In this document: one piece after another, positions 326 through 25,111 of the stretch
Position numbering within the stretch: the stretch's first letter is position 1
Layout of the letters: every line of letters begins with the position of its first letter
Origin: Bugula neritina
Taxonomy: Eukaryota; Animalia; Bryozoa
Reading direction: 5' to 3'
Assembly (NCBI GenBank): GCA_964035545.1
Contig: OZ037770.1
Span: forward strand, 12,080,642-12,144,641
Length of the DNA stretch: 64,000 bases
Made by a program: the position numbers and the translations under genes
The notes under the pieces: model-generated
Told to the model about the DNA's origin: nothing
What the model saw: only the letters and a program-made list of their open reading frames with translations
The model's database searches: none

Positions 326-441
326 ATCTTGTGGATCTGTGTAACAAACAGGTATAGGTTCCTTCTCCAGTACTGCAGTTGTGACAGTCATTGGATAATG
401 GATTGGTTTTTATACCAAACAGGTTGGAAGTTGTTGATTGG
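326..441 (-). promoter_or_regulatory. Promoter and non-coding exon 1 of a third array paralog whose body lies off the left edge
   Basis: On the minus strand: CCAAT (437-441), TATAAAAA (407-414), Inr-like TCA about 30 nt downstream, then a GTAAG donor (321-325). Homologous to 8981-9110 and 23034-23162; bases 1-200 also resemble intron 1 of genes A and B. Confidence 0.6.
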
Positions 442-1429
442 ATGAGTATTGACCATTGAGTATTGAGTATTGAGCATTGACCATGAGTATGTTCATCGCA
501 TTGTTTTCAACCCTTTTATTTTAGGTAGCAGCTGATCAAATCCGATTAAAGTTTTGTGTATGTCTCTCCTGAAAAAAGTTCCGAGTTTCAGTTAATAATG
601 CTTGTCCGGGTACCCCTTTATAGTCAAACTGAAAACCGTTGAAATTATATTGAGGCAGAAGTTTACTTTGTAAAATTAAAATCTGACTGCCTAATCGCTA
701 TTTGATGCCCTTTGTAAATGTCATGAATTAGTGAAGTTGACAGCACAAAGGCGTAGGCGATATCATTATTAAAATATAAGTACGTCATCTGATTGCCAAA
801 GTCATAACTAAATAACGATGTTTACAAGGAGTTATTACTCCTTTTGAGTATTACTCTGAAATTGGCCAATTAAGTTATCACAGTACAAAATTTTTACAAT
901 TGGCTTTTAAAATTGGCTTTTACAATGCAGTGGTTTTTACAATGCAATGCAACTCGAAGAATTTTCAACTCGGCCAAATTATATTTCCGACCTATAATCG
1001 TGAGGGTATAAAGGCAACTTTAGTTATTCCATTTGTTTATGCTATGTTTGCTTTATAGATTCAGAGACCGGTCAAAGAGTTCAAGATAGTTTATTGCTCA
1101 AGATAATAAAGGTCCACTCTGGATAGATCTAAAAGCACAAACTGACTAATTATTGATAACACGAATAACATAGTATAAAGTATAAACAAACAAAGACAAA
1201 GCTTATTCAGCACATCATCAACACATTAGCCTAGCAACTGTATCTTGTAATCATGTATAATGTCCGGTTGATATAACTGTATGATATGCAATGTTTACTA
1301 ATTTTATCATTATTATTATTAAAACTGCTAAACTTAATAAGGTACATTTTTTATCAAGACATGGCCACGTTTTCTGAGAATTTCAACGAGAAGCTATAGG
1401 ACACCATGACGTTTGCCCTTTTCTCTGAT

Positions 1430-2640
1430 TTACTTCTCTCTACTTGTAATAAATCATACATTATTTTCCTAAAAATATCTTATTTTAGCCACAGCACAGT
1501 AAGAAGTTTAGCTTTATTTAAGTTATAAAATAAAAGTTTCTAGATACAGGAATATAATATAGACTCAGGTTTAAGAATTGCTATGCAAGATTTCGAGCAC
1601 ATTCACAATTTAAAGTACTAACATTATTTTTACAGTTACATTGCTAAACTATTCTAACAATGAATGTATTTGTCACATATTTTTAACAGTGAAACTCTTT
1701 AATTCAGGAAAAATATCTTATTTGCTTCCAAATGTGTATGGCCATGAGGTATATTTTTTGAGTAGAGATATGATTTGATTTATAACTTTCTTGAACGGTA
1801 ATAAGCATCAGTACAACAATTCACAAGGTTTGCTACTTTAGAAAAAATTATTTTGTAAAATTTATATTTGAACCCTGTTTGCTATTCTGGAACAAATAAA
1901 CTCAGTTATAAGTGTTATTGCCAGGCTCCATTATGTTTCATATTTTTAAAGTTAAGTAACTGCAGAGGAGTTCCTTGATATTATCTTCCTCACTAAACTG
2001 GTTGCAAGTAGAAATTGGAAACTCATCATTTAAAACGTGAAATAGTCACAATCCAGCAAAGTTAGGTTTCACGTTACCCACAATGCAATTCAATATGCAT
2101 CTGTCAGGCATTGCAGTCACTGCAAATGTGAGAAAAATTCCCTTTGAAAGGAAATCAATGAATTAATAAGTGCAAACATACTTTGATCAGTTTGGTAATT
2201 AATGATTATAAGACAAATAAATCAATGACTGCATGAACAAAAATGTTTACAAACCAATTGATTAACTTGCAAATATTTTAGCAAGTGATCCCCTGTGTTG
2301 GTACCAATGATGCACACGAATATTGATATATGTAATTCAATGCATTAGAGCATATGATAACCAAAACAACACAGTGTGGCTTGTATTTAACTTCGTCTTA
2401 TTGCTTTAAGGAACACATCCATTCAAAGCTAGTGGTTCCACAATTTACTAATTAATTGTTTTATAAGTTTAATAAATGAAAGAATGGACAAGAAAATTGC
2501 TTACAAGCCAGTTGGTCAATTTAAAACCGGATGTTTATATATTTCAGCGTGGTCATTTGATTTGCAAATCAACTAAAACAACACAGCGTAACTGTTATGC
2601 TGTTCCAAGGAATAAATTCATTCAAAGCTGGTAGCTCTAC
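1430..2640. repeat. Segmental duplication, upstream flank of array genes
   Basis: Aligns by eye at about 90-95% to 23358-24675 over its first ~700 bp, less beyond; a partial, more diverged copy lies at 10020-10350. Confidence 0.9.
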
Positions 2641-21999: not shown

Positions 22000-23350
22000 A
22001 GACTGAAATATTGCAACATGTTTCTGTGAACCTAGATGCCATAGCCTTACTGCAAGATGATTATATAGGCTACAATGGGGAGGGTTACAACACTTGAGCA
22101 ATTTGGCGCAATTCCTCACTCAAATTTAATAATATATCAAGATAGTGTATGGCTGCAAAATGGTGGACAATTGGCAGTCTCTAGTTTAGCTATATTTTCA
22201 AATAATATTCTTTTAAAATAATATTTTATTTTAGTTAGTATAAGTTATATGGCTATTAAACAAACTATAATTTCTGAAAATTGGCTTTTTTTAGAAAATA
22301 ATCATTACTTCACTAATTATAATATTGCTGCAATAAAGAAATAAAAATTTCAACAACCCTTTTGTGCTCAGAGGATTCTGAAAGCATTAGTTGAGAAAAA
22401 ATGAATTTGCATAATTCTAAAAACATCAACAACAAATTAGTCAACGTTACAAAAAATTTTCATTTAAAGTAAAATTAATTGTATCAAACAGCCTGGTAGT
22501 ACCTAAAGGTAACTGAAAGTTTTTTGGTATTGTATAGTAACACTACATAGTAATTTGTGCTAACTCAACTTTTATGAAGTCGAGAGCAACAAAAGAAAGC
22601 TAAAAATAAATTACTTTGTAGTGCCATCCAAAAGTGTGTAAATTTAAACTATTTTACAAGGCAAGTACTATAGCAGTGCCAACTATTTGTATTAAATAGT
22701 ATAGAAGCAGCAAGGGAATGTTTTAGTAGGTTATCACACAGATCTATTGACTGATTTATTATTGAATCTTACATAAGTATACATAATAAAACATAGTAAA
22801 CAATAATAATAATATATCCTGTGGCTGACTTGCCATGACTCTTGCAACAGAGGTAAAATAACGATACAGATGACAAAACAGCTTTCTTGTCCTGATTCAC
22901 TTAAGTACTAAAACATTACCCCACCTACTGGACATGATACAATTTTTCTGCAGATATTCAACAAAATTGTGTTTTGGTTTTCTATTACAGAGTTAAGTAA
23001 TAAAATATTATTTAAGTGATAATTTAAACTTACGTTGTGTGATCTGTATAACAAACAGGTATAGGTTTCTTCTTCAGTACTGCAGTTGTGAGATTCACAG
23101 TATGATGGTTGGGTATTTATACCATAAGTTGGAAGTTGTTGATTGGTTGAGTATTGACCAATAAAATATACTAATTTGCCATTGCATTATTTTCAACCCA
23201 TAGATTTTAGATGACACCCGAGTGAAACATATTGAAGTGTTCCATGTTATAGCAAATGACCTTTTATACTTTCCATCTTATAATTTATACCTTGTCATCA
23301 TTCCTTGTATTAAGTTTCAGTGCTCTAAATTTCCCATTTATATAACGGTA
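22000..23350. repeat. Duplicated promoter, exon 1 and 5' intron 1 block shared with gene A
   Basis: Aligns to about 7915-9310 at roughly 85% by eye. Confidence 0.9.
23034..23162 (-). promoter_or_regulatory. Promoter and non-coding exon 1 of gene B
   Basis: CCAAT boxes 23142-23146 and 23158-23162, TATAAATA 23114-23121, GTAAG donor 23029-23033; acceptor at 19424-19426, 2 nt before the ATG. Confidence 0.7.
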
Positions 23351-25111
23351 TGCTTATACTTCTCTCTACTTGTAATAAATTATACACCATTTCCTTGAAA
23401 ATACCTTATTTTATCCACAGTACAGTTAGAAGTTTAGCTTTATTTAAGTTATAAAATAGAAGATTCTAGATACAGGAATATAATATAGACTCAGGTTTGA
23501 GAATTGCTATGCAAGATTTTGAGCACATTTACAATTTAAAGTACTAACTTATTTTTACAGTTACATTGCTAAACTATTCCAACAATGAATGTATTTGTCA
23601 CGTATTTTTAACAGTGAAACTCTTTAATTCAGGAAAAATATCTTATTTGCTTCCAAATTTGTATGGCCATGAGGTATATTTTTTGAGTAGAGATATGATT
23701 TGATTTATAACTTTCTTGAACAGTAATAAGCATCAGTACAACAATTCACAAGGTTTGCTACTTTAGAAAAAATTATTTTGTAAAATTTATGTTTGAACCT
23801 TGTTTGCTATTCTAAAACAAAAAAACTCAGTTAAAAAAAGTGTTATTGCCAGCCTCCATTATGTTTCATATTTTTAAAGTAAAGTAACTGCTTGCGGAGG
23901 AGTTCCTTGATATCATCTTCTTTACTAAACCAGATGTGAGTGGACATTATCTTCCTCACTAAACTGGTTGCAAGTAGAAATTGGAAACTCATCATTGAAA
24001 ATGTTAAATAGTCACAATCCAGCAAAGTTAGGTTTCGGTTACCCACAATGCAATTTAATATGCATCTGTCAGGCATTGCTGTAAGTGCATGCATGTGTAA
24101 GAAATTAAGTCCCTTTGGAAAGAAGTAAATGAATTAATTGAAATGGGTTTATCTTTAATGTAGTTTTATGAACAAATCACACAATAAGTGCAAACATACT
24201 TTGGTCAGTTTGTTACAATTTTAATGCCGATAGGACAAATAAATTAATGACTGAACAAAAAATTAGTTTTAAATCAATTGATTAACTTGAAAATATTTTA
24301 GCAAGTGGTCATCTACATTGGTACTAATTATGCAAAAGAATATTGATATATGTAATTCAGTGCATCAGAGCACGATAACCAAAAAAACACAATGTTATTT
24401 GTATTTAATTCTATTTTATTGTTCCGAGGAATAGATTCGCTAAAACCTGGTAGCTCCACAATCTGCTAATTATTTTGTTTATAAGACAAATAAATAGAAG
24501 ATTGAACAAAAATAATGGCTTACAAGCCAGTCGATCAATTTGAAAACATTAATGCTACCAGTGCAAATGTTTATTTATATAATTCAGTGCGATTATTTGA
24601 TTTGCATATCTATTAAAACAACGCAGTGTAAGTTTCATATGCCGATTTAAAGAATACATTCATTCAAAGCTGGTATTATTAATGTCATGGCTTCAATCAA
24701 TGCCCTTGCACCAGCTCAAGTCGTGCTCTTTTTTGAAAAGGCATATCTCTGCTCACTGAAAACGCAGCTTTGTTGATTTAATGAGATAACAAAGTCAAAT
24801 ATTTGTGCAGCTTTAGCAACTTAGGTTATCTATATTATCATTTTCATTAGATGCAACATGATGTATTCCATATTTTGCTCATCTATATAGCTTAGGCATT
24901 ATAAAGCTGACAATCAAGTTACTGTTATTGTCCGTATGTTCATATAGCAATCATCAACATAAATTACAAATAAGAAGACTTCTGAGGTATTATTTTGTAA
25001 AACATATTATTTACAGCATAGCATTGTTCAATATTTACATTTCATAACAAATTCAATCAGTAAATAATCCAATGAGCAGTTCAGCTTTCCTTTAGCCTAA
25101 CTCTGTCACTA

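Follow-up and report, generated by a model that had tools for sequence, protein, structure and literature searches.

How can neighboring genes keep nearly unalignable bodies between ends that are shared along an array? The question is raised by a 64,000-nucleotide stretch of chromosome 6 of the bryozoan Bugula neritina (assembly tzBugNeri2.1, Plymouth; genome total 216,009,554 bases), G000:C6:12080642-12144641, which is the window of this study and carries two such genes, A and B, on its minus strand. They belong to a tandem array of about 50 kb (G000:C6 ~12,056,500-12,105,400), and the analysis also covered the 40 kb to the left of the window. The full array holds five bodies, D, C, E, A and B, where the initial annotation had counted three copies. 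Our preferred answer, to which we give a probability of about 0.72, is that old bodies sit in a younger shell that recombines among the copies by non-allelic homologous recombination, in a five-body tandem array of a gene family found only in Bugula data. It draws on the anatomy read from the sequence, the contrast in age between bodies and flanks, the breakpoints within the flanks and the restriction of those flanks to the array. Coordinates without a prefix are window positions, negative numbers lying left of the window, and BLAST, Pfam and fold searches were done exon by exon. Relatives from the United States (US) came from JGI samples 3300002729 and 3300003318 and from NCBI assembly GCA_010799875.2 (a type-S animal from Virginia).

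Gene bodies and their age

Six exons are predicted per gene: a non-coding exon 1, a body of four exons (e2-e5) and a 25-codon tail exon (e6) with the 3' untranslated region (UTR). A and B share an identical plan of exons and phases, and the 68-, 336- and 208-nt exons of equal phase first reported for these two recur in D and in a US gene, F; in US locus L014, e4 has 315 nt, unlike the 336 nt of A, B, D and F. In every e2 the ATG lies 3-5 nt past the acceptor, and each e5 closes on a GT donor in phase 0. The product of e2 is a helical domain of about 210-220 residues, and that of e3 to e5 is mostly coiled coil; the summed exons predict proteins of 449 residues for A and D and 428 for B. For A, the predicted body follows from its splice motifs and open frames and from what is conserved in D and L014. 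The G+C content over the A/B region is 29-33%. The five bodies are of three types (A/D, B and C/E) and lie as follows:

G000:C6:12058921-12059580, left of the window: e2 of body D
G000:C6:12066661-12067248, left of the window: e2 of body C
G000:C6:12080442-12080641, left of the window: 200-N gap interrupting e2 of body E
4689-7216, minus strand, inside the window: body of gene A, with e2 7216-6557 (ATG at 7216, 220 codons, helical domain), e3 6389-6322 (68 nt), e4 5844-5509 (336 nt) and e5 4896-4689 (208 nt; donor GTAAGT, phase 0); e3-e5 coiled coil
16963-19421, minus strand, inside the window: body of gene B, with e2 19421-18789 (211 codons), e3 18673-18606 (68 nt), e4 17679-17344 (336 nt) and e5 17170-16963 (208 nt)

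How far apart are the bodies of A and B? Their e2 exons are 37% identical (BLASTP E 4e-34), within the 35-40% given for the N-terminal domain in the initial annotation, and the later exons, described there as barely alignable, reach 5%, 27% and 31% in e3, e4 and e5. No match between the two genes was returned by tblastn for e4 or e5, nor by blastn for the internal introns. Pairwise synonymous divergence by the Nei-Gojobori method (NG86 dS) is undefined or 1.4-2.2, that is, saturated, with nonsynonymous divergence (dN) at 0.56-1.2. The flanks of the same two genes differ by only about 0.15-0.22 substitutions per site, as computed from block identities, so that synonymous change in the coding sequence (CDS) does not equal flank divergence; the initial annotation had named such equality as a refuting result, and it was not obtained. 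Within types, e2 of A and D is 83% identical in protein and 90% in nucleotides (dS ~0.21), and the bodies of C and E share 72-77% DNA identity.

Comparing the window with itself recovered the flank blocks reported earlier, each at about 80% with gaps counted. The promoter block (7864-9321 versus 21939-23358) is 80% identical with gaps and 85.6% without, in line with the ~85% first read. The upstream flank (1431-2633 versus 23357-24675), said to reach ~95%, gives 80% in BLAST and 87-98% in 100-nt windows at 24100-23400. At the 3' side, blocks 3727-4517 and 11986-12791 are 80% identical overall and 80.6% without gaps; the ~90% previously assigned to this flank applies to its distal part, but the proximal part, with tail exon and UTR, is only 64-81% identical between A and B. 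Identity had also been said to fade toward the start codon, and it does: in 100-nt windows it is 85-93% at 9300-8800, then 70-74%, 64-65% and finally 53-59% at 7400-7217, with a weak self-match joining 7636-7787 to 20004-20176. Taken at the level of sequence, the bodies appear old and the shell young and mosaic, and homology collapses at the body edges.

The shared ends

What is being shared? We read the flanks as probable gene ends (promoter with exon 1; tail exon with 3' UTR) rather than mere spacer. Six promoter copies were aligned, two of them from US animals and the others from this genome, and in these an inverted CCAAT, a CCAAT, a TATAAA, a stretch of ~58 nt and a GTAAG donor follow in conserved order, which marks the upstream block as a predicted promoter plus non-coding exon 1. 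The initial annotation had called the flanks non-coding, and this fails at the 3' side, where a conserved 25-codon terminal exon lies. Its acceptor and open frame are kept in A, D, E and L014, and between block lineages it is 78-81% identical versus 64-75% for the adjoining intron and UTR. The tails of D and E have the same 25 residues with 4 nucleotide differences, all silent, and by such conservation the tail exon looks real. In B it carries, relative to E's 99%-identical copy, a 2-nt insertion that shifts the frame and brings a stop after 13 codons at 12744 (exon 12744-12785). The shell elements in the window are these:

36-549, minus strand: promoter block of copy E, from alignment and motif search (CCAAT 441, TATAAA 414, exon 1 donor GT 325)
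1234-2675: spacer block U of copy E, upstream, array-only in the whole-genome search; 89.6% identical to C's U and 86.7% to B's (gaps excluded)
2426-3727: spacer block W, downstream of gene A; the spacer that follows E is almost the same (96% over 1302 nt to G000:C6:12072416-12073710; 97-100% in 100-nt windows), only ~160 nt of it belonging to a dispersed repeat
3727-4517, minus strand: 3' block T of gene A, with the end of the last intron, e6 (CDS 4511-4434, 25 codons plus stop, phase-0 entry), the 3' UTR with several AATAAA signals, and downstream DNA
7864-9478, minus strand: promoter block P of gene A (inverted CCAAT 9109, CCAAT 9093, TATAAA 9068; putative non-coding exon 1 ~9038-8981, donor GT 8980), extending over the first 1.1 kb of intron 1
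9599-10347: partial spacer block U of gene A; 75-81% identical to the U of US loci L009 and L014, 77% to B's
11983-12873, minus strand: 3' block T of gene B (e6 start 12785); 94.5% identical to E's T, 99% around the exon
12867-14164, minus strand: block V, part of B's 4-kb last intron; 87-95% identical between copies
21939-23358, minus strand: promoter block P of gene B (inverted CCAAT 23162, CCAAT 23146, TATAAA 23121; putative exon 1 ~23091-23034, donor 23033), also holding the start of intron 1
23357-24790: spacer block U of gene B, mosaic

Block V is common to B, E, the C-D junction and US locus L009 and is array-only in the whole-genome search. In intron 1, B has about 1.4 kb of extra DNA compared with A.

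For the five bodies, motif search counts exactly four promoters and as many tail exons: B, A and E have both, C has a promoter but no tail exon, and D has a tail exon but no promoter. The C-D region (G000:C6:12056492-12069277) thus has one promoter, C's, and one tail exon, D's, and block V, starting from C's last intron, reaches D's e2 acceptor directly and in frame. For these reasons C-D may be a single transcription unit, with a fused or alternatively spliced product possible. The left edge of the array adjoins tandem repeats of 73-88% identity (window -36500 to -25000; G000:C6 ~12044100-12055600).

Dispersed repeats of ~160-230 nt, present in tens of copies genome-wide at 70-84% identity, lie in intron 1 of gene A (8637-8868), the distal end of its 3' block (3727-3927), the intron before its e4 (5767-5963) and spacer W (~2980-3135); they could act as seeds of ectopic exchange. 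Between A's promoter and spacer blocks, 9499-9570 on the minus strand matches the tRNA family of Rfam at the borderline (30.1 bits; gathering score 29 bits). It was not confirmed by ARAGORN, Rfam was otherwise empty, and the site may be the remnant of a tRNA-derived repeat.

Exchange among the shells

Have the shells been exchanged between bodies? The initial annotation described the flanks as mosaic, B's proximal promoter resembling A's and its distal upstream region a third copy's, and both parts of that picture are borne out. In sliding windows, B's U is 92-99% like C's at 24200-23400 and closest to US copies at 24700-24200; at ~23383 it switches from C/E-like to A-like. A maximum chi-square test there divides the informative sites 72:11 versus 36:118 (0 of 2000 permutations as extreme). 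Downstream of E, the sequence is 98-100% B-like from block V through the tail exon and, after a crossover zone of ~300 nt, 97-100% like the spacer downstream of A; the maximum chi-square breakpoint falls at window -6649 (179:10 versus 12:149, chi-square 267, 0 of 2000 permutations). These sharp breakpoints, upstream of B and downstream of E, show non-allelic recombination that is recent and restricted to the shell.

Flank trees contradict body trees. D has an A-like body and a 3' block 86-87% identical to those of B and E versus 71% to A's; E has a C-like body and a tail-exon region 99% like B's. Some paralogous flank tracts (97-100%) are closer to each other than to the best US Bugula counterpart: the U segment of B is 97-99% like C's versus 82-96% like two US copies, and tracts of V, T and W are 93-100% identical between paralogs versus 84-88% to L009. 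In these tracts, but not in A's proximal 3' block, paralogs are closer to one another than to the related genome, which is the signature of concerted evolution. The earlier proposal of recurrent gene conversion or unequal crossing-over is upheld as to non-allelic exchange in the flanks, by the chi-square breakpoints and the incongruent trees; that the exchange was recurrent, rather than a few events, is what we infer from them.

The US samples hold all three body types (P0001, P0004, P0005) and an additional B-like body, F; since all three occur there, the body types predate the coalescence of the flanks. Locus L013 is 90.5% identical to the B body region (18135-20140), L014 81-83% to A's whole unit and L015 76-80% to C. 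The type-S body F, at L009, has no close counterpart in this genome and is 58% identical to B in e2; its locus matches the B body at 66-74% but the B upstream blocks at 85-91%. L009 and L014, from independent assemblies, thus show the same shell around other bodies. In L014, the e2-e4 protein is D-like, and e5 with the 3' block is A-like. Beyond F's last-intron block, L009:14140-18852 is an element of ~4.7 kb with at least 30 copies in this genome at 83-87% identity, probably a transposable element; being multi-copy, the outer flanks of L009 are of no use as a control.

Mechanism and alternative explanations

How might such a structure persist? The shell would comprise the promoter, exon 1, the start of intron 1, spacers U and W, the last-intron block V and the tail exon with its UTR. 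Within it, non-allelic homologous recombination would continue, as gene conversion or as unequal crossing-over in intron 1, the last intron and the spacers, and would halt where homology collapses, at the body edges. Because exon 1 is non-coding and the body a phase-0 module, an exchange would still leave an intact gene.

Must selection be invoked to keep the old bodies apart? Recombination limited by mismatch could do so equally well without it. The alternative is that balancing or diversifying selection holds the body types apart, so that individuals carry different cassette sets, and that shell recombination shuffles, duplicates and deletes cassettes. Raised pairwise dN/dS (1.09-1.55 in three comparisons), other sequencing runs that hold 0.03 of gene A's 31-mers and cover it only where D and B would, and the type-S body F, diverged in e2 inside flanks of 85-91% identity, speak for it; against it stand the lack of any visible signal peptide or membrane segment, pairwise dN/dS mostly below 1, and a related cluster at C6:15.63 Mb that consists of ordinary tandem duplicates. 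The divergence between individuals, moreover, comes from runs of coded identity and lacks a control locus for the genome background, and on balance we hold this explanation to be unlikely. Slightly more doubtful still is the idea of a full cassette system, in which any body works behind any promoter and before any tail and colonies are dealt different sets of old cassettes. It would show as presence/absence and as hybrid units, and would resemble the self/non-self or immune recognition loci of colonial animals.

The other explanations stand much further back. An assembly artefact, with haplotypes collapsed or stitched, some paralogs being alleles and near-identical tracts false joins, might be suspected from the 200-N gap inside copy E just left of the window's first base and from an assembly that is not fully phased and whose Hi-C scaffolding used data of another colony (PMC11480708). 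We consider it improbable: over unique gene A DNA the source run has an even k-mer depth of 95-101, with ~200-400 where two to four copies share sequence, and, as the maximum diploid depth is ~127 (27.37 Gb of HiFi reads over 216 Mb), gene A is present in a diploid dose rather than as a lone haplotig; a single contig carries both C and E, and the US assemblies show the same plan of shell and body. Recent duplication of whole units followed by very fast divergence of the bodies, through hypermutation or positive selection, could account for the gradual fall of identity from promoter to start codon and for the raised dN/dS. With internal introns as unalignable as exons, dS saturated and all three body types present in US samples, it is very improbable. 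Equally remote is purifying selection on regulatory DNA as the sole cause of flank similarity. The core promoter, exon 1 and the tail exon are indeed the best conserved parts in all copies, but one and the same spacer can be 97-100% identical between two copies and 64-82% between another two, with sharp switches, which is why constraint is not the cause; it is disfavoured for the spacers and still holds for short core elements. Transposable elements or dispersed repeats beside unrelated genes, one of the refuting cases named in the initial annotation, are hardly credible as the source of the flanks. Short dispersed repeats do occur inside the blocks, but only those stretches of ~160-230 nt match outside the array; in whole-genome searches the full-length P, U, W, T and V are array-only, in fixed order and orientation, and the promoter, exon 1 and the tail exon are part of them.

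Several observations weigh against old bodies in a recombining shell, or against the detail of that reading. A's proximal 3' block pairs with US L014 (92-95%) and not with B, D or E (64-81%), and in their promoter blocks C and E resemble A and B at no more than ~70%. Ongoing conversion may not be needed, since a few unequal crossovers that broke within the end introns could account for much of the pattern. The scaffold gap (window -199 to 0), which ends immediately before the first base of the window and splits E's e2, leaves local order and completeness uncertain: compared with copy C, ~1.5-1.8 kb seems to be lost there, namely the start of E's e2 and most of intron 1, and because of the gap the link of E's body to E's promoter relies on scaffolding. 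It is motifs and conservation that support exon 1, the tail exon and every splice join, and the public annotation of one relative, EB796_003383 (225 aa), is a single-exon read-through. Splicing and expression of the array genes are accordingly predicted ones; among the runs on record no RNA run contains the gene A region, the four compared runs all being DNA.

Selection and variation between individuals

Are the bodies under diversifying selection? Per-exon pairwise NG86 estimates, from too few sequences for site models, give dN/dS of 0.3-1.5 overall and mostly 0.3-0.6. Three comparisons exceed 1: C versus L015 in e2 (1.30), B versus F in e4 (1.55) and A versus L014 in e4 (1.09). Raised dN/dS does not prove positive selection.

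The 31-mers of the 5,901-nt gene A region were compared among runs. Two further runs that share the study and organism label of the source run, their identities coded, contain 0.03 of these k-mers, and the US metagenome runs 0.05-0.06. Contigs of the other runs cover the promoter block, e2, e3 and repeats at 90-95% and miss e4, e5 and the proximal 3' block. With gene A absent or more than 10% diverged, paralogs D and B would leave such a coverage. This is a hint at large differences between individuals and, having no matched control locus, no evidence of hypervariability. For a control, neighboring open reading frames (ORFs) found no relative in two metagenome scans, and a search with an RPB2 exon found no Bugula sequence.

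The initial annotation had placed the array with immune, allorecognition or toxin clusters. Such an assignment is not established: dN/dS is not consistently above 1 and no signal peptide or membrane segment is visible. Should the hint of colony differences hold, the array would become a candidate recognition system in a phylum with none known molecularly, a candidacy that also leans on its restriction to a colonial, symbiont-bearing animal; should it fail, the array is a useful but ordinary example of partial concerted evolution.

Comparison with known systems

The kind of pattern is known, namely partial concerted evolution in which the coding lineages are old and their flanks recombine. What is new is the family, the phylum, a four-exon body with its introns as the old unit, the phase-0 modularity and five bodies in four shells. 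In the var genes of Plasmodium falciparum, the upstream regions fall into conserved classes, exon 1 is hypervariable, and the intron and exon 2 are conserved. As in Bugula, the variable coding part is enclosed by a promoter region and a conserved 3' exon that are common to the copies, and ectopic recombination reshuffles the family. There are ~60 var genes, at dispersed or subtelomeric sites, and their products are surface antigens that are expressed in a mutually exclusive way, whereas the Bugula array is a five-body tandem in an animal with a shared 3' exon of only 25 residues. In the clustered protocadherins and UGT1A, variable exons with their own promoters are spliced to shared constant exons. 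The conserved promoter of each variable unit and a body donor that must join a short constant 3' exon recall this arrangement, as does the C-D unit, with two bodies, one promoter and one tail exon. In Bugula, however, the constant exon is repeated (four for five bodies) and each body has four exons; instead of a single shared set of constant exons, sharing is limited to the C-D pair.

In MHC class II B and DRB loci, the introns that flank exon 2 may have a history other than that of the exon. Sorting of introns within species, and concerted evolution by conversion, are summarized for MHC class II in PMC4369332. Like class II B/DRB genes, the array has old coding lineages in younger flanks shaped by recombination, with conversion among tandem paralogs leading to clustering within species. 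It differs in that the old unit is the whole four-exon body with internal introns and not one exon, and that its proteins look cytosolic and belong to an unrelated family. The Sp185/333 (SpTransformer) genes form a tight sea urchin cluster with shared 5' and 3' flanks and edged segmental duplications, a proposed substrate of duplication and conversion (PMC3091723). Both are tight tandem clusters in marine invertebrates with flanks common to the genes. The Sp genes are highly similar, have mosaic elements and microsatellite edges and encode secreted immune products; the Bugula bodies, by contrast, are nearly unalignable and the blocks lack microsatellite bounds. The KRTAP1 tandem paralogs change mode abruptly at coding edges, which has been explained by short-tract conversion (bioRxiv 10.1101/282418), but they are the mirror image of our case, as there the coding sequence is concerted and the flanks radiate.

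Why does the array merit attention? It is an unusually clean natural case in which recombination and divergence split a gene into two compartments of very different age. The boundaries of the compartments match the modular design of exon phases, which makes the exchanges harmless to the gene. The analysis also defines a Bugula-restricted family with constant tails and fast-changing heads.

The protein family

What do the bodies encode? Pfam returned nothing past its cut-offs for any body exon. A profile of eight N-terminal domains, run against 1.84 billion representatives, found only Bugula-derived ORFs, plus one distant type, P0006; the gene family is found only in Bugula data. Clusters of the P0006 type lie at G000:C6:15626698-15654938 and G000:C8:8234803-8250116. 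The former has four copies with units 84-95% alike and is an ordinary tandem array without contrast between flank and body.

The AlphaFold2 model of the N-terminal domain is all-helical (pLDDT 76, pTM 0.77). Foldseek against the PDB gave nothing at E <= 0.001. The ESM Atlas offered no usable lead, the best feature score (0.89) falling on helical families of tethering complexes and shape TM staying at or below 0.37. A Bcl-2 fold was considered and rejected, as no Bcl-2 entry appeared in Foldseek or among the 50 best VIA-align rows. HEPN domains fill many of the top VIA-align rows (Z 9.2, 8.3, 7.8), below the meaningful level for helical bundles and with ~100 of 220 residues aligned; the R-x(4-6)-H motif is absent and the family alignment has no invariant Arg or His, so HEPN was rejected as well.

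By eye, and with no dedicated predictor run, no signal peptide and no hydrophobic or membrane segment was seen in the exon translations; neither a secreted or membrane protein nor a known immune domain, as a recognition protein would have, was found. The constant tail is an acidic stretch followed by Y-N-F-L/I, which we take to fit short docking motifs such as the Atg8-interacting motif or a Y-x-x-hydrophobic motif. As to function, our guess would be an adaptor of the cytosol, built on a coiled coil, whose head evolves fast and whose tail keeps a constant acidic motif with a tyrosine.

Other features of the window

To the right of the array, the ORF at 43832-44416 on the minus strand matches the Pfam Insulin/IGF/Relaxin family (E 1.1e-4, 23.6 bits against a cut-off of 23) and may be the exon of an insulin-like peptide. 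Five minisatellites lie at 27327-27727, 28610-28850, 30469-30676, 31596-31973 and 35685-35847, with periods of 31, 16, 32, 33 and 30 nt, respectively. The stretch that holds them (26-36 kb) has 36-39% G+C and is in parts strongly C-skewed, and the 33-nt minisatellite reads in one frame as a repeat rich in Ser, Thr, Pro and His.

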